DNA from: Cyanophora paradoxa CCMP329
Taxonomy: Eukaryota; Plantae; Glaucophyta
DNA length: 64,000 bases
Direction of reading: 5' to 3'
Assembly (NCBI GenBank): GCA_004431415.1
Contig: QPMI01000184.1
Coordinates: 140,494 to 204,493, forward strand
Position numbers and translations under genes: made by a program. The notes beneath the pieces were generated by a model. It searched no databases and was not told the DNA's origin. It worked only from the letters and a program-made list of their open reading frames with translations. Positions 39,701 through 50,175 of the stretch are shown in pieces. Within the stretch, counting starts at the first letter, position 1, and each line of letters opens with the position of its first letter.

Positions 39701-40785
39701 TTGAGGCTGCGCTCCTCGGGGGTCAGGAGGAAGAGGAAGGAGACCGTCGAGAACCACCACGACAGCTGCGCGGGCCGGGGGGTTGCAGTCGGCCTTCGTA
39801 CTACGGTAGGGGCAGCCGGAGCGGGCAGCGGCACCCCGAAGAAGATGTTGATGACGGTGATCACAGCGTTCTCGGGCCCCCAGTACGCGTGGCTCCGCAT
39901 GCCCCTCGTCCCCTGCTGCAGAAAGAGGTACGGCAGGGCTGCGCACAATCGATGTCATGCGCGCGCGCGCGCCAACGCCCCCGGAGGCCCCCATCGGACG
40001 CTAAGCGCTAGCGCGCGCTAAGCGCTAGCGCGCGCTAAGCGCTAGCGCCACACGCCGGGGGAGAAGGCCGAGGGGTTCGAGCGGCGAGCTGGCGAACTCG
40101 GGGATTCGAACGTACTGAACGGAAAGCAGACGTGGCTGCGGGCGCCGGCCGCGGCCGGAGCGTCAAGTTGGCGTCCAACCGTAATGTGTGCGACGTGCAA
40201 GGTCAACGCGAGTAACGCACACGAACAGCTCGTTGAAGAAGGCGCGCCAGTCGAGCGGGAGGCGCTGCAGCAGGTTGTGGTCCGCGTCCTGCGCGCCGGA
40301 CGCCGCGACCGCGCGGCCGCGGCCACGCGGAGGTTCATGATCAAACGCTAAAGCGAATGCTTAACGCGCGCGCAAAGGCAATGTTCCGCAAAGGCAATGG
40401 GAAGCCTTCATCCTATGTTTGCGCGGCGTCGACGTCCGACGCGGCAGGCCTAGGGGCAGCGCCCTTATCCGGATCCTGGACCCTTAAGCTTATCTGGCAT
40501 CGCCCTCGCGATCGATGGCTCCCGATGGCCCCGCGGCTCACCTCGCCCTGGAACAGCTCTCGCTCGAGCCACACCGCATCGGCGAGAGCCGTGGCGCTGC
40601 TGTCTCCCGCGGCCGCGGCCGCGACCGTTGGGCCATGTACATATCGAGACGTGATCGGCGCTGCTGCCTGCGCTGCGAATCGGCCGGACGACGTGGAAGA
40701 AGTCGACGCCGACGCTGAAAGTGGGCCCCGTCTGAGCCGCTCCTGCAGCTGCTCCATCCGGCTGGATCAAATGTACCGTACCCAT
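36800..40785 (-). CDS. Multi-pass membrane protein, possibly PHTF-family-like
   Basis: Many hydrophobic exons (LSWWFSTVSFLFLL, RPLMVAVKYG, SMYFFVTAFFVSACVDYHRR, FFLSCFALLLAAQMAFLFF). LDLRRPAAAMAWLRLRAW and the terminal LELEDRLRPVALL|GMRMDEALLRSLLSAGLSAL recall PHTF C-terminal motifs. The 5' end is uncertain. Confidence 0.45.
40000..40048. repeat. 17-bp tandem repeat, about 2.9 copies, built from palindromic words
   Basis: GCTAAGCGCTAGCGCGC units start at 40000, 40017 and 40034. Confidence 0.9.
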
Positions 40786-40806
40786 AGGATTCAGGCAACT
40801 TGGGCA

Positions 40807-40951
40807 TGTTGCCACTCCACTACGTACCCTTTTGCACCACGTAGCAGAATCGAGTTGGACGGGCCTATTACATGATTGCCGGGGCCCCGTGCCCAAATCC
40901 GCTTTGGGCACGTCGGGGCTAGGGCGCGTCGTGCCCAAAGGCCTGGGCACG
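40807..40951 (+). repeat. Left terminal inverted repeat (145 bp)
   Basis: TGTTGCCACTCCACTACGTACCC...CGTGCCCAAAGGCCTGGGCACG is the reverse complement of 47629-47773 with one mismatch (40943). Confidence 0.95.
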
Positions 40952-40989
40952 GCGGGTAGAGCAGCGTCGTGCCCAAGTCGTGCCCCGCG

Positions 40990-43419
40990 ATGGCGGGAGA
41001 GCAGCCTGGCAGCGCGGCAGGCGGGGGCGTGCAGGCTCCAACTATGTGGTCGTTCTGTGTGTACTTGCATAGCGAAGTTGGCAATCCAGCGGAGTGCTTG
41101 CCGACGATGGGCAACATGGTCCCAGCACCGCTCATACCGTCGGCGGAGCCCATATTCAGGAAGCTGGTAGACAGGAAGCTTCTTCGTCCGGAGATACAGC
41201 AGATAGATCAGCTGCGCTTCTGGCAGTGCTGGCGGGGAGCTACTGTGCGACTCTATCATGACGTGCGAGTCGTACTGCCGCGTGCAAGCAACGCCGATCG
41301 ACTGATCTGGACTCGGGCATGCGCAGGAGTTCGCCGTGGTGGTCGAGGGAGGGCCCGTTACCCTCATCGTCGCGCCGGCCAAAGTAGTGCAGCCCGACCT
41401 GGCGCACTACGGCCTGGTGCGCTAGCTAACGTGAACGATATCCCGCGCCTGATGTCTCCTGCAGGGCCTCCCACCGGCCGGCCCTGCAGCTCCCGCAGCG
41501 CTAGCAGCGGTAGCGCCTCGCGCCCCCACGGCCGCATCCAGCGCGGGCAGCGCCGCCGGGAGCGGTGATGAGGATGACGGGCTGGAGCAGTATGAGCGCT
41601 TCCTCAGTCTGGACACGGATGGCATCTTCGGCGGGATCAGCGCTGACCAAGCGAAAGACCAGGTACATGATCCGGGCACGATCCGGGCACGTACGGGGCA
41701 CGTCTGAGCACGGGCCGTGCACGCAGATCTTTGGAAAGGGCGCGCGAGCGAACATCAAGAACCTGAACCGATTCCTTGCCGCCCCGTTTCGTCTGCACTA
41801 CGGGGAAGCTGACGGCCTGAGCAAGGTGAGAGGACAGAACACGCTGGTCATTGCAGACATGGAAGACGCGTGAGTGGCTGCGTTCTTTTGGAAGCAGCAC
41901 AAGAGCAGCGCAAACCTTGCCTCGCAGGTTGGCCGTCCTCCTGGACAGGACGGTGGAGACCTCAAGCATCCCAGCGAAGATCAAAGAGAAGTGCACGGAA
42001 CGGATGAAACAGCGGCTCCAGACCCTCAACCCGTACGAGAAGACCCGAGCACTGCTGGAGGTCAACAGGATCTACAGGACATGGACGATGATCATGTCAG
42101 TCGACAACATCCCGTTCCTTCCGAAGTGCGCCCTTGCCGCTCTCTTTCTCTTTCTCTTTCTCCCTCTTTCTCCCGCCATGGACGCTAAGCCTCGCCGCAG
42201 GCCTGACGTGGAGCCGCCATGGGAAACGAACCTGGCGACAGTGAAGGAGAAGGCGGCCAGGTCGGGCATAACACACCAGAGCCGGGTTCACGCTGCGAAG
42301 CGAAGAGACGACGAGAACTCCGATGGAGGAGGCGGCGCTGCAACCGAGCATCCGAAGAAGGCGACCAAGAAGGCGCCAGCGGAGAAGAAGGCCGCTACGG
42401 AGAAGACGAACCGGGCGCGGAAGCACGAGGAGGCGGAGGACGAGAACGCGGCGGAGGCCGCCGTGACCGGAGCACGTTTGGGCACGGCGCGGGCACATTT
42501 GGGCACGACGCGGGCACGTCCACAGTCGTCGGGCACGGCTGGGGCACGTAATGGGGCACCACGTGCTGAGAAATCGGTGAGCTTTCATGAGGACGTGCTC
42601 GAGACGCCCCACGCCCGCTGTCACATTCCAGACACTCATGCAAACCCGGCGCAGGCTACGGGTGGGCAGAACGCAGAGGACTCAGTGAAGAAGAAGAAGA
42701 AGAAGAAGAGGACGCCGGCGCCGAAGGACACTGAGGAAGAGCTGGAGACAGAGATTGAACCGCAACTGTCGAAGAAGCCCAGGGCAGCGAGCGTGAAGGA
42801 GCACACGTCGGCGTCGTCGTCGTCGAAGGTGGCTGCCCGCGCCGTCCAACGTGTGCATCTCTCCCCACCTGACGTTCACTGAAGGCAGCATCTGGCCCGG
42901 AGAAGAAGGCGGCGAAGGGAAAGGACCCGGAGCACTCAGGCAAGGCTCAGGAGCAATCTTCGCACAGGGGGCCCAAGCATGCGCCCTCGCGCGACGACGA
43001 AGCCAGCACTCAGGCTCCCCCGTGCGTTCCCGTGCTTGGGCACGGTCTGGGTACTATTTCGGCATGTCGCGTCCTTGGTCGTGCTGCACTCTCGTGCCCA
43101 AACGTGCCCCAATCGTGCCCCAACGTGCCCCATGGTTCTCCCGACGAAATCTGATTCCGGAGCGTCGCTGTTGCAGGCGAGAGAAGGGGAGGCACTACGA
43201 CTTTTCTTATTTCTTAGCGAATCCCAGTTCAAGTACTTCCTGTGCATACGGGAGACGGTCAAGTCCAAGAGCACATACAAGCAGGGCCACATCTTCCCCA
43301 AGTGCAACAAGCACGGCGATCCGCCGTCGGGCTGCCTAGGGGTGTACGGGATCAAGCAGCTCATTCAGGACACCGCAAAGCTAGCTGCGGCCCAAAAAAA
43401 GGCGGCGGCGGCAAAGTAG
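40990..43419 (+). CDS. Transposon-borne accessory gene of unknown function (multi-exon, Lys-rich, Cys/His C-terminal cluster)
   Basis: The ATG is 39 bp inside the left TIR. In-frame exons with GT-AG introns: ...PIFRKLVDRKLLRPEIQQIDQLRFWQCWRG..., EFAVVVEGGPVTLIVAPAK, DEDDGLEQYERFLSLDTDGIFGGISADQAKDQ|IFGKGARANIKNLNRFLAAPFRLHYG, KIKEKCTERMKQRLQTLNPYEKTRALLEVNRIYRTW, VKKKKKKKR, and KYFLCIRE...GHIFPKCNKHGDPPSGCLG...AAAAK*. Confidence 0.65.
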
Positions 43420-44039
43420 ATCCAGTGTCTATCTCCTAGTAGCAGTCCTAGTAGCTCTACTAGCATTGATAGTGTTGCTCTATTAGGGTTTTTGCAGCGT
43501 ATCTTCCTTAGAATTGGGTCGTGCACTGGTCGTGCCCGGCTCGTGCCCAAACATGCCCAAATGTGCCCCGTCATGCCCAAACCGACTTGATCCTGAATTT
43601 AGCAGTGATTGACGTCGCGGAGCACGATTGCGCATTGAACTGCACATTTGCCATGTGAACTTAACAGTATTGATATTTTACAACGTTTTGATGAAGAAAG
43701 GCGATGCGAAGAACTTCAGCATGACATGTTCCGCGTCGCTCAGAAGTCTGACCATCGGACTCGCATCATGATGTGAAGCCAAGGGTCATGAACTCATGAT
43801 GAGGCCTCGAAGACCTGAAGCAGTTCCGACCCGTCCGAGAGGCCGCACAAGTTGAATTTGAGAATGCTGAAGCCTTGTTTAACTCGTATTCATGAAGCTT
43901 CATGGTTCGCTCCCTCTTTACCGGTTTCTGCTACTTGCTCGTGCCCACGTCATGCCCAATCGTGCCCAAGTACGTGCCCAGACGAAGTTCGGACATGCTC
44001 AAGGAGGGCACGACTCGGAAACTCTTTCACAACGAAAGG

Positions 44040-47000
44040 CTATTCCAAAATCGATCGTAAACTGGCTGCACTACTTGGCATTAGAGGGCCCGCCTCAGCC
44101 TCAGGCTCGGCGGGGCCAGCCGCGGCCTCTGCCGCGGCAGCGGCCTCCTTCTCGGCGCTCTTCTGTACTTTCTTCCAAGGTTTCTGGATGCAAGAGCGGT
44201 TCTTGCACGCGTCCCTCCCCGACTTCTTGTGGCACTTTGACGAGCAGATGATGTCTTCGTACTTGCAAATGCACTTCTTGTTCGTGCAGCCAGTCGTGCA
44301 GTTGCAGATCTTGCTCGGCCTGTCGATTTCGATGGCGCACCAGTCAAAGAACGCTTTTCTGCCAGGCAAGACATGGCAGTCAGAGCGCTGAGAAAGAATG
44401 CTGGAGGAAGACGGACCTGAGGGTTACAGGTTCGGTGCTGGCGGCGGTGATGCTCTCGATGAGATGCTTGAACCCGGCAAAGCCGCCGGTCTCGCCTGGA
44501 GGGGCAGGATGCCGCATAGAGCACACTTCGTCGGCCTGGAAGAGGCGGGGCTGAGAGTCGTCATCGTTGCGCTGGACTATACCGGCAGCAGTCTTGAGGA
44601 TGTACTTGTTGAAGCCCGTGCCGACCGCAGCAATGACCGCGTGCACCATTGCGGGCATGCGGGCCTCGTCCAGGGCACGCGGATCGCAGTCCTTCACGCT
44701 GATGGATACCAGCTGCGCGCCCAACGTGAGCTCCATTGTCGTGTCCAAATGGTGCTCAAAACCATACCCAAACGTGCCTCGCGGGGCACGTTTGAGTATG
44801 ATTTGGGCACGTCGGAGCATGGGGTTTGGGCATGACAGAGACGCACGTCGCCGACTGCAAGGTTGGCGATCTCCCCGGCTCTCTTGCGGGCGAAGTCAAT
44901 CATCCTGTTCCTGTACGCCGAGAGACGATCGTTCAGGACCCCTACGTAAGCCTTGTACTTCTCGTGCTCCTTCTGCGGGAACAATGTCAGTGCCGACAGC
45001 CATTAACGTAAACAGGACATAGCGAACCATGAAAGCGATCGGCATCCCCTCGATGGTGCCACGACGGAAGCCGCCTTTGAGATGGCGCTCTGCGGAGTCC
45101 AAGTACTGCTCCGATTCCTTAGATTCCTCCTCCTCCATGTCCTTCACATACTTGTCCCAGAGGATCTGCTGCTTGTCGGTGGGCACCCAGCTGTCCCGGG
45201 CAGCTGCAGCCTCAACATCTTCGTCCGTGCCGACATCGACAGTGATTCCCGCATCCTGCACGACGGGCATGGGAGGGAGCAGCATCAAAGCGTTCAAGAA
45301 GGCCTAGGGAGGTGTGCACCTTCATGAGCTCCTGGAGCGTAGTGCCCTGCACGACCTCCCGCTCGTTGTAGACACGATCAGAGGAGGCGGGAGCCAGGTT
45401 TCCGAATCGCTCGGACGGATCTCTGTTGAACATGACCTTGAAAGGCGTCTGCTTGTGCCCCTTGGTGAAGATGGATGTGTTCATCTGCCACTGGACCTGT
45501 GCCTGGGTTGGTTGCAGGGCGCGAGCATGTCGGCACGGTCATACCGGGCCCAGGGCGGACACCCAGTCTTTCGTTCCGTTGAAGAAGCAGTACGCAGTGA
45601 CTCGGCGGCCGAGCGTCCGGTTCGCGCGCTCCACAGAACCTGCAAAACACGGTCATACCCGAACATGCTCAAACATGCTCGGCACGTGCTCAAAAAGATC
45701 GTTGGGCACGATTGAGCATGATGTTGGGCATGTCGCGGGCATGACGCGGGCATGGCGGGGCATGGCGAACCTTGGTGCCAGGGACGGTAAGGCGCGCCGG
45801 TGATGATCACTATCTTGCGCCCCGTCACTCGCTGCCATTGCTTGCACGTCGAGCGAACAACCTGCGTCCACTTTCAGCTGATATGACGGCCCTAGGCAGA
45901 CGTCCAAATGTACCCTGTTTACGAACTCGGACCCGTTGTCGTGATGCAGCACTTGTGGGACTCCCATCACCTGGAAAATCTCGACAAGAGCCTGTGCGAC
46001 GCACCAGGCGGCCTTGAATTCCAGCGGCCTCAGGATGCTGAACCGAGAGAAGTGGTCCTGTAAATGCACCCATCATGATCAATGAACAGCCAGACAGATG
46101 GTGTTGAACAGCGAACCCGGACGTGCAAGACGTATCTGTACCGGCGAGTCGGGTGATCGAACCACTCGACATCCTCGCAGTCGAGCCTGTCCATGGCCGC
46201 CGCTTCCTCGTCGGTCTCAGGGATCCTTGGCACTCGAATCGGGATGGGAAGCTTGCTGAAGTCCTTGAGGTCGATGACGACGCGAGACCAGGCGGACTTT
46301 GCGACGATAGGCTTCATGCCCGCGAGCTTCGCAGCGAGCTCGACCGCCCTGTTGATGGCACAGTACGGGCAGCGCTGCGTACGGGTGTCAGTCTTGCTCA
46401 GGGTCCCCGCGCGGGCAGCTGCAGCGAGCACCTTGCAGAAGTACTCGACGAACTTGTCTTTGATGGCATAGACGCGCGAAACCTTGCCCTTGACGGTGTA
46501 CGCAGCCTCGTGCGCCGCGTTATGGTACTCCTGCGCGCGCGTCGTCACGTCGTGCTCCGGGCACGGTTTGAGCACGATTGGGCACGATGTTTGGACACGT
46601 CCTTACCGACAGGATTTCGAAGACCTCGCGGGCGTCCTTCGGCAAGATACGCACTTGAGTAGGGGCCGTCGCCGCCACCGCTCCAGTGTTGTTCTTCTGG
46701 CGCTTCTTGGCCACCTGCACTTCCTGCATGACATACACCGCGGGTCCGTTCGGGTCGCGCGGGTTTGGCTGCTCGACTAGAACGTAGTTGCCGGTGCGGT
46801 TCTTGATCCGCTGATCGTTACTCTTCTTGGCCCTCCCCTCCGCAGCCTTCTGGTTCTGCTCGTCGCTCTTGTTCGGATCCGCTGGCGCCTCCAGGTCCTT
46901 CCTCTGGACGCGCGCACGCACGACTGGCTTCGACGCGTTCAGCCGCTTGATCGCCTCCTTGTCGTTCGCGTCCCCGGCTGCCTTCATGTCCCGCTCCCAG

Positions 47001-47578
47001 ACCAGCGCGTTGTAGCGTTCCGTCTCGTCGAGTGCGCGCTCCGCGTTGGGATTCCCCTGCTCGTCCTGCATGTCCTTGTGCTTCCGGAATGGCGCTAATT
47101 CGTTGCACGCCTTTATGAACTCTTCGTACGTCCAGCGCACGGTGTGCCGCGTGCTGGTCGTTTCCTCGCTGGGCGCTGCGCCGCCGTCCGAGCCGTCCGA
47201 TTGCCGCTGGGTCGCAGCAGTTGGTGCCCTACGCTGCTCCGGAGGGACGACATACGCGCCAGGCGGCGGGCCAGCTGCTGCCGTGCTGTTCCCGCCACCA
47301 TTGCTTGAACTGCTCGAAGGCCCCGCGCGTGCCTGCTGGAGCTGATCTAAGAGAGATCTAGCAAGATGCCCGCCAGGACAATGGCCGCGGTGGCCCTCCT
47401 TGTGATCGCAGTCGCAGCTCGAGAACGACGAGATCAGCTGCTCGATGTGGCAGGTACACTTGCGGCCGCACCACGCGCGACCCGCGAGCACAGCTGTCTG
47501 TAGCGCGAAGCTGCAGAAGACGCAGAACTGCAGAATCTGGCCGGCCGCCTGAATCTCCTCCGGCGACAGGCCCAACAT
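44040..47578 (-). CDS. Ginger2/Tdd-type DDE transposase (rve integrase core, KRBA2/SCAND3-like) with C-terminal CXC-like domain
   Basis: HHCC zinc motif: EYHNAAH...RCPYC. Catalytic residues: RVVIDLKD (D), LHHDNGSEF (D) and PYRPWHQ|GSVERANRT (E). Also QDHFSRFSILRPL and QTPFKVMFNR. C-terminus: CNCTTGCTNKKCICKYEDIICSSKCH. No premature stop was seen after removing inferred introns. Confidence 0.9.
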
Positions 47579-47628
47579 CGCTGCAGCTGTCTGGGCTCTA
47601 ACACCTGTCGTGCCCAACACAAAGCTTA

Positions 47629-47773
47629 CGTGCCCAAGCCTTTGGGCACGACGCGCCCTAGCCCCGACGTGCCCAAAGCGGATTTGGGCACGGGGCCCCG
47701 GCAATCATGTAATAGGCCCGTCCAACTCGATTCTGCTACGTGGTGCAAAAGGGTACGTAGTGGAGTGGCAACA
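47629..47773 (-). repeat. Right terminal inverted repeat (145 bp)
   Basis: Ends ...GTAGTGGAGTGGCAACA, followed by the TSD GGGCA. Confidence 0.95.
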
Positions 47774-48000
47774 GGGCAAGCTCAGGCAACACTCAACGAC
47801 ACTGTACAACCTAGCTCTCACTCCCATCAAAAATAGCGGCATAGCATCTACGCAGGACCCGAGGGGGCCGGGCGGCCCCGTTCGTGAGCTGCAGACTTGG
47901 ACGTCCGCCAGTGCGTTCAAAAGAAAGAGCAGCCGGCTCCGCTGTCGCCGGCCGTGGGGGGCGCGCCTGGCGGACGTGCGGCGGACTCGCCTCTCCCGCC

Positions 48001-49632
48001 TCACTTGCTGATCACTGCGGGCGGCGTCAGAGCCGTCAAAACCGCTCAAATTCAAACTGAACAGGGCGCACTGTAGTCGAAGAGGACGGAGACGGACTCC
48101 TCGTTGTGTATCCGGCGAATCGCCTCGGCGAGGGTCTGCGCGATGGAGAGGACCTTGATCTTGCCGCACGCCAGCTTTTCCGGGCCCAGCTGGATGCTGT
48201 TCGTCACGATAATCTGCACCGCACGGCGGGGTCCGGCGGCTCAGGCCAGGGGGCCGGGGGAGAGAGGGGTGCGGGGGAAGCGACCTCCTCGACGGGGGCG
48301 GCGGTGATGCGCTGGATGGCGGGGCCGGAGAGGAGGGCGTGGATGCCGCAGGCGAGGATCCGCCGCGCGCCCTCCCGCTTCAGCGCCTCTGCCATCCCGC
48401 CCCGCCCGAGCCTCAGCGACGGCGAGGGCTGGGCCGGGGGTACAGGGCGCACGGACGGCCTCGCAGAGCGTGCCGGCGGTGTCGATCATGTCGTCGACAA
48501 CGATGCAGTCCTTGCCCTGTGCGGCGCGGCGGGGCGTGAGGCGGGAGGAAAGGAAGAGAAAGAAAGGAAGAGAGAAGACGGCCGGACCTTGACCTCGCCG
48601 ACGAGGTGCATGAAGTGGGCGACATTGGGTCCGTCCCGCCGCTTGTCGATGATCGCCAGGCCGGCGTTCAGCCGCTTCGCCACCGCCCGAGCCCGCTCCA
48701 TCCCCCCGGCGTCCGGCGAGACCTGCGCGTCCGCCTGAGGCGACAGAGAAGAGAGGGCAGCGTGGCGGAGCCGGCCGGGCCGCGGGCGGGCACCACGACG
48801 ATGTCCTGGAGGTCCTTCTCCTTGATGTAGTCGATGATGACGGGCCCCGCGTACAGGTGGTCCACCGGGATGTTGAAGAAGCCCTGGATCTGCCCCGCGT
48901 GCAGCTCCAGAGTCACCACTCGGTGCGCCCCCGCCACGGTGACAAGGTCCGCCACTGCCGCCGGCGTCAGGGCCGGCCAGGGAGCGGGGCGAGGAGCCGG
49001 GGCGGACCGAGCTTCGCGGAGATAGGCACGCGGGGCTGCGCCTTCCGGTCCTGGCGGCCGTATCCGTAGTACTGTACACGCGCGCGGGTCGGCGGGGCCC
49101 GAAGGGGGGCGGGCGGGCGATCGCGGAGGCCGGCACCGGCAGGACGGCCGTGATGCGCTTTGCCGAGGCGCGCTTGAGCGCATCGATGATGACCAGCAGC
49201 TCCTGCCGCCGCAACCGGTCGAACGAAGACGGCACACAACGGCCCGCGGCGCCGCGCACCATGATGTTGTCGTTCACAGGTGGGCAGGTGGGCTGGATAA
49301 CGAACACTGCGCGATGGGGCTGCTCGGCGGGGGCAGACCCAGCATACAGCGTAGCACTCACCATCGGCACCACGGACGTTCTCTGCGGCGCGCGGCCGAA
49401 GCCTCAGTCAGCCAAGGGCAAGCCGCGCGGTCTGACGCGCTCACCGTTGATCTGGACGCGGACCTCTCCATCCGAGAACTGGCCCACCTCCATGTCCGCG
49501 ATACGAACACCCAGCAGGTGCGCGATCTCCTCCGCGAGGGGGCGGTTCGCGTTGCCTGCGCAAGACTCGGTCCCGCGAGCGCACGGGGGCCAGCGGTCTC
49601 TTACCAGTGAACAGCTTAATATCGTAGTTCAT
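48001..49632 (-). CDS. prs: Ribose-phosphate pyrophosphokinase (class I PRPP synthetase)
   Basis: IKLFTG|[90 protein letters not shown] and ESVSVLFDY|MISK*. Confidence 0.95.
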
Positions 49633-50175
49633 TTTCTACGCGCAGCTAGCGTTAGCGCACACGGAGCTAGCCGAGGGCGGCTAGATCGCGCGATCGGGCG
49701 AGGCAAGCACACCTGGTCGCCCCGCACATGCGCGTGCGCCAAGCTCGCTGCGGTGTGAGACATGTTGCCGCCTCGGGTTCGCTGGCTGCCTCGCACAGGA
49801 TCAACCCAGGGGGATACGTGTTTTCGGGGCGATCGCTCATCCAGGCAGGCGCACGCGCGAAGCGCTTTGCAATTGAGCTCCCCGCAGCCGCGGCCGATCC
49901 AATCGCCTCTCGCGGATCATCGAATACATTACATTGCAGGCGCTCGAGGCGCCTGGCCAGCGGCCGCCCAGCATAGCTTCGATTCGGAGGCTAGGAATTC
50001 GGCTAGCTATATATAGCGCTAGCGCTGCAGCTGCGCATGCATACGCTGCCATGCCGCTGCTGTCGATGAGGTCGACTACAATCGCGCATGCGCATGCACT
50101 GCGGCAATCGATATCGATGGAGATCGCGTGCACTGCGGCACGTAAAACATGTACATATATGCTGGTGGGGCGGGG

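Follow-up and report, generated by a model that had tools for sequence, protein, structure and literature searches.

Why would a DNA transposon carry one short motif, in regularly spaced arrays, through its termini, its introns and the spacer between its genes, and which protein would recognise it there? The question is raised by an element of ~7 kb at positions 40807-47773 of a 64,000-nucleotide stretch (the window) of the glaucophyte Cyanophora paradoxa CCMP329 (assembly GCA_004431415.1, contig QPMI01000184.1, positions 140,494 to 204,493). The element contains two genes running convergently, a spliced orphan accessory gene on the forward strand (40990-43419) and a transposase gene on the reverse strand (44040-47578). 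A preliminary description had noted arrays of the motif GGGCACG and proposed that one of the two proteins recognises them. The arrays argue strongly for binding by some protein and, with moderate confidence, for one encoded by the element itself. That the role of this protein is to maintain the activity of the element in a CpG-methylating host, convergently with the VANDAL/VANC and Spm/TnpA systems, is a reading by analogy that we favour tentatively, at a little under even confidence.

Phased motif arrays along the element

The element contains 36 copies of GGGCACG (5.2/kb), against 19 (0.33/kb) in the remaining 57 kb of the window, a single region that serves as the host control; the form TTGGGCAC occurs 18 times inside and never outside. 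By comparison, the word CAACGC/GCGTTG has three copies in the element and is not enriched there. When the terminal inverted repeats (TIRs) are set aside, 28 copies are observed in the interior against 1.6 expected (maximum 7 in 300 simulations). Element introns carry 9.8 copies per kb compared with 0.29 per kb in 64 pattern-called putative host introns, a difference of ~30-fold, so that the motif is, as had been judged by eye, only sporadic in host genes and far commoner in the introns of the element. The full consensus is broader (GRGCAYG, often preceded by TT), and all motif and array counts leave out a 425-letter block that is present in other copies of the element.

Both TIRs contain the inverted motif pairs described previously: the left arm (40807-40951, forward strand) at 40888/40906 and 40930/40945, and the right arm (47629-47773, reverse strand) likewise with two pairs. 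Further inwards, two reverse-strand copies 11 bp apart lie just upstream of the accessory ATG (40968-40985), and one reverse-strand copy (47609-47615) lies ~30 bp upstream of the transposase ATG. Within the accessory gene, four forward copies spaced at 11/11/10 bp occupy an intron that is inferred from RNA length (41663-41726); eight forward copies span 84 bp, or 8 x 10.5 bp, at 42470-42560; and an intron at 43022-43176 holds two facing arrays, ~3 copies on the forward strand and then 4-5 on the reverse strand. Between the two stop codons there are six reverse copies with a period of 10.4 bp (43520-43578) and a second group with four on the reverse strand and 1-2 more (43940-44012). The transposase introns contain facing arrays at 44713-44846 (four reverse, then four forward) and at 45640-45770 (3-4 reverse, then six forward, with CATG variants predominating), and an array with one reverse and four forward copies at 46531-46606. 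All arrays previously listed are thus present, but the one placed at 42470-42566 is not intronic: RNA contigs run unbroken from 42201 to 42575, and the array lies in a coding exon that encodes a disordered linker. Array centres are 0.4-1.1 kb apart along the element.

The copies are closely phased. Thirty-four of 36 close same-strand spacings are 10-12, 20-22 or 31-33 bp (p 5e-16), and the best array period is 10.25-10.5 bp (mean over arrays 10.7). A scan blind to the motif found eight phased clusters within the element and a single unrelated cluster in the 57 kb outside it. Agreement between adjacent units is 0.74-0.85 at the five core positions that are fixed and falls to 0.37-0.51 in the spacers; with cores kept and spacers diverged, the arrays are not the product of simple recent duplication. 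Phasing and core conservation together fit protein-binding sites.

The arrays could also be minisatellites without function that arose from the TIR motif through slippage or conversion, since they consist of degenerate tandem repeats of 10-11 bp, lie in GC-rich DNA and mostly occupy unconstrained sequence. This explanation was already unlikely and we rate it very low: besides the uneven divergence of cores and spacers, the same core recurs at eight separate internal places in both orientations, the phase is held across a 19-bp gap, and nothing alike is found in the 57 kb of host DNA in the window. The variants are, moreover, strand-asymmetric, with 13 CATG against two CACA (p 0.007). Neutral CpG decay does not account for this excess because it would affect both strands equally; a T in place of methyl-C is, we infer, what would be expected of a binder that tolerates methylation.

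Candidate binding proteins

The transposase gene comprises 11 exons and encodes ~925-934 residues. All ten of its introns are GT..AG joints that appear in three RNA-like runs, each from a different study, and are missing from a DNA run; the RNA status of the three runs is itself a guess. The HHCC and DDE motifs are complete, as had been claimed: HHCC begins at residue 327 (46524), and the catalytic residues are D392, D483 and E525 (46272, 45940 and 45631; D-x41-E). Queries for the database searches, here and below, were single exons, open frames or database models, exons being joined only for checks of frame and spacing. One transposase exon matches Pfam rve (E 6e-6) and an IS481-like family (E 5e-5). 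All four runs have an additional G at 44085, which places the true stop at ~44071; this and two other one-base differences (42862 and 45756) probably reflect errors in the assembly of the window. In one RNA run the end of a contig splices a GT donor at 47471 to the acceptor of the last exon (47472/44358), which would give a 40-codon out-of-frame product.

Two parts of the transposase may contact DNA. Its C-terminal tail (from 44306) is CXC-like, with eight Cys, a His and a terminal CxN. CXC domains are mainly DNA binders (PMC3447885), and the tail shares the Cys spacing and terminal CxN signature with the CXC domains of MSL2 and of tesmin/TSO1/LIN54 (PMC3447885), differing in that an adjacent His replaces one of the nine Cys. 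The strict 9-Cys consensus consequently fails, whereas a relaxed pattern that allows this His matches once in the six frames of the window; the tail has no Pfam, hidden Markov model or PDB match. At the N-terminus, 13 Cys/His fall within residues 19-71 (47366-47524, reverse strand) and, although without a Pfam match, form a second candidate zinc-binding or DNA-binding module, which is kept in an internal-deletion derivative of the element.

The motif could therefore be the transposase's own site, with the TIR pairs used to recognise the ends and bring them into synapsis and the arrays of the interior acting as accessory, enhancer or titration sites for a 7-kb transpososome, with no role in silencing and with the accessory gene doing something else. 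The symmetric inverted pairs 82-145 bp inside both ends, the CXC-like tail and the N-terminal Cys/His cluster would suit such an arrangement. It offers no clear reason for eight internal arrays that run along the element and avoid conserved coding sequence, and the tail on which it partly draws has neither the strict consensus nor a Pfam or PDB match; we consider it somewhat unlikely. It overlaps with a self-marking function because a transposase can itself be an activator, as AtMu1 is.

Homologue searches with pieces of the transposase returned nothing, or only the element's own deleted copy (P0008), but these queries were limited in length and uninformative on full-length kin. The integrase exon had no match in viral contigs; in metagenomes it recovered nine distant integrases (two LTR (long terminal repeat) retroelements, IS-like (insertion sequence) and one OTU-linked), and the four of these nine contigs that were checked contained no comparable arrays. 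The OTU-linked arrangement, in metagenome contig L080:794-2800 (30% GC), consists of an OTU-like open reading frame followed by an HHCC/DDE integrase frame that appears Ginger-like by eye. The TIR pattern did not occur in the viral and metagenome contigs.

The accessory gene is represented by database models P0001-P0005 from C. paradoxa (EukProt EP00741), which lie on five contigs. It has eight introns (41263-41326, 41417-41464, 41663-41726, 41870-41927, 42126-42200, 42577-42654, 42829-42884 and 43022-43176), four of them RNA joints and four predicted from GT..AG, with which the spliced length becomes 629 nt and equals that of the RNA record. In the protein, the N-terminal and middle regions look folded, a long linker that is basic and disordered carries a poly-Lys run resembling a nuclear localisation signal, and the C-terminal region is beta-rich. 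Among 1.84 billion representative proteins its only homologues are the family's own copies; it therefore shows no detectable relationship to VANC and was not recently captured from the host. The possibility of a recently captured host gene, raised in the preliminary description together with absence from other copies, is rejected, as no host paralogue or homologue exists in these searches, models are found on five contigs, and GC content at third codon positions (0.75) is like that of the transposase (0.79).

The present copy of this gene is shortened. At a breakpoint at 43203-43209 (forward strand) it lacks ~420 bp corresponding to residues 441-558 of the 621-residue model P0005, and the DNA run carries 425 letters where the window has 43204-43208, so the claim of an intact element with a second spliced gene stands for the splicing, whilst 118 C-terminal residues are gone from this copy. 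Two RNA contigs stop exactly at the 43203 breakpoint, which suggests that the deletion is real and that both alleles are transcribed.

In a search with language-model features over residues 110-280, the nearest clusters included those of TAF9, TAF13 and archaeal histones, with lead-level scores of 0.78-0.81. Against a histone profile built from 49 archaeal histones only, the middle region scores 12.1 in hhalign, within the range of shuffled sequences (mean 10.9, maximum 17.1), although the register is plausible by eye. Single-sequence AlphaFold models of accessory regions reached pLDDT values (predicted local distance difference test) of 38 and 32, and fold searches on them are therefore meaningless. 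A BAH-like reading of the C-terminal region, made by eye, was dropped, having no support from Pfam or PDB.

These leads bear on the proposal that the arrays recruit a host protein, such as a transcription factor or a methyl-tolerant reader, or position or exclude nucleosomes through the 10.5-bp alternation of GC-rich cores with TT/AA, thereby favouring expression. Motif clusters do lie directly upstream of both start codons, the repeat length is that of one helical turn with T-rich positions before the core, and the families nearest the middle region of the accessory protein in the feature search were solely of the histone fold. The motif is, however, not enriched in the 57 kb of host DNA (19 copies, and none of TTGGGCAC) and the histone-fold lead falls within shuffle scores, making this proposal distinctly unlikely. 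Taken as the binder itself, a host protein is improbable, the transposase a possible choice and the accessory protein about an even call. The accessory protein is preferred only because arrays spread over the whole body resemble the layout of VANC targets; the transposase comes close behind as a candidate and is the sole one with a recognisable candidate domain, the CXC-like tail.

Possible self-marking and anti-silencing

In the self-marking model, the GRGCAYG arrays would be putative sites for a protein encoded by the element, and copies one helical turn apart could dock several protein units on one face of the DNA. Arrays would have accumulated where the sequence is free to change, namely in the TIRs beside both start codons, the introns, the 3' spacer and one disordered coding linker, and with one array every 0.4-1.1 kb the entire element would be marked. 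The likely purpose would be continued transcription of the element and its copies despite host CpG methylation on transposons, much as VANC and TnpA do. In C. paradoxa 32% of CG sites are methylated (mCG), as are most repeats, and genes that carry methylation are largely silent (PMC12344493). Both genes of the element nevertheless give spliced RNA, in three independent RNA-like runs, and the accessory gene is native to the family. An outcome of anti-silencing or activation is proposed by analogy only.

VANC, from Arabidopsis VANDAL elements, binds tandem motifs of its own element, which lie in introns, between genes and at the termini, and reduces methylation there (PMC5735166). As in VANDAL/VANC (PMC5735166, PMC10398659), the element described here has an extra gene, short tandem motif arrays in introns, intergenic DNA and termini, and a methylating host. 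The differences are considerable: VANDALs belong to the Mutator superfamily, whereas the transposase here is integrase-like and no Mutator-type transposase is present; the accessory protein lacks detectable similarity to VANC and any Pfam match; the motif contains CpG, is strictly helically phased and inverted in arrangement, with one array exonic; and binding and demethylation, known for VANC, are proposed here. The element would thus work like VANDAL/VANC by hypothesis and is not a member of that group, as superfamily and protein both differ.

TnpA of Spm/CACTA and the AtMu1 transposase are sequence-specific activators at clustered terminal motifs (bioRxiv 10.64898/2026.08.24.746577). Clustered motifs at the element ends are shared with these systems, in which the known binder is an element protein and possibly the transposase itself. 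Their binding and hypomethylation are limited to the termini, whereas the arrays here span the whole body, and TnpA is transposase-derived, whereas the accessory gene gives no sign of such an origin.

Several observations weigh against self-marking. Arrays are found in only five of the 18 introns (three of these with two facing arrays). Searches of Pfam, NCBIfam, PDB and a protein atlas recognised no DNA-binding or chromatin domain in the accessory protein. No sister family in which motif and accessory gene might have diverged together was found in the searches of viral and metagenome contigs and of homologues. RNA contigs cannot assign expression to a particular copy or level, and the observed/expected ratio of CpG is 1.02 in the element against 1.09 in the host, so close that it is uninformative on methylation.

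A bolder version, which we regard as doubtful, holds that methylation-tolerant self-recognition evolved independently here, with an orphan of new fold, possibly histone-fold-like, polymerising on the arrays and shielding the element from CpG silencing, and that unrelated Cyanophora families might do likewise with motifs of their own. In the literature found, sequence-specific anti-silencing by transposons has been shown experimentally only in flowering plants (VANC, TnpA and AtMu1). A Ginger-type equivalent in a glaucophyte would, if true, mean that a distant lineage with CpG-only silencing had evolved the strategy independently, and could provide a new class of DNA-binding proteins for targeted epigenome editing. 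The hypothesis is directly testable, with a defined motif, two candidate proteins and enzymatic methyl-sequencing (EM-seq) data published for the species (PMC12344493).

Family assignment, copies and insertion site

The ends of the element are intact, in agreement with the preliminary description. The two TIR arms are 145 nt each and 99% complementary, with a single mismatch, and terminate in TGTTG on the left and CAACA on the right; they are flanked by 5-bp target site duplications (TSDs) of GGGCA (40802-40806 and 47774-47778, forward strand).

As a cut-and-paste transposon the element fits, by its structural features, Ginger2/Tdd, the group of DNA transposons defined by Bao, Kapitonov and Jurka 2010 (PMC2836005). 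It shares TGTNR termini (TGTTG), a TIR length within the 45-297 bp of the family, and a transposase with an H2C2 zinc finger and an integrase-like DDE core; unlike in Ginger1, this transposase has neither a YPYY nor a GPY/F motif. The family has 4-bp or, in Tdd, 5-bp TSDs, and the one insertion examined has 5 bp, as in TDD-4/5. No Pfam match to reverse transcriptase, RNase H or gag was found in any piece of the element that was scanned. The element differs from the family in its second, convergent gene, its 18 introns, its internal phased motif arrays and its glaucophyte host. Its GGGCA target, in a host of 71% GC, also differs from the AT-rich RTATAY of metazoan members, a preference that is not diagnostic and is seen here at one site. 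The literature searched, which lay outside Repbase and most subscription journals, contained no report of a Ginger element in Cyanophora, nor of any Ginger element that has a second gene or internal arrays.

In the DNA run the element is collapsed into one contig with a depth of 703, against 87-94 for incidental unrelated contigs. This suggests about eight near-identical copies, or 6-8 as a rough range, depth not being equal to copy number. Gene models of the element are spread over six contigs, and the element has recently multiplied and is young. The segment 46041-46980 is missing in some copies (depth 251), with a 4-bp GCTG microhomology; the deletion affects roughly one third of copies, in which HHCC is lost together with the first catalytic Asp, and the deleted copies match models P0008 and tig00021463_g21623. 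Loose ends of RNA contigs, which probably mark further derivative copies, were also observed: at 43949 contigs from two runs continue into sequence from outside the window, and those at 44408 and 44485 switch to 47432 and into TIR sequence.

At the insertion site (40800-40808 and 47774-47790), the left TSD together with the first TG of the TIR reads TTGGGCATG, a variant of the motif, and the target site reads TTGGGCA, which is rare outside the element (6 occurrences in 114 kb of strand positions). With this single insertion as its basis, the choice of target might be guided by the motif. The empty site is flanked by a 9-bp direct repeat, TCAGGCAAC, and the left flank contains a short tandem repeat at 40010-40050 (17-bp unit, ~2.5 copies). 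To the right, a reverse-strand host gene at ~48050-49750, by eye similar to ribose-phosphate pyrophosphokinase, has its stop codon ~280 bp from the right TIR, and the element may lie in or near the 3' end of this gene. One RNA contig extends 1372 nt past 40990, possibly representing host read-through joined through the identical TIRs.

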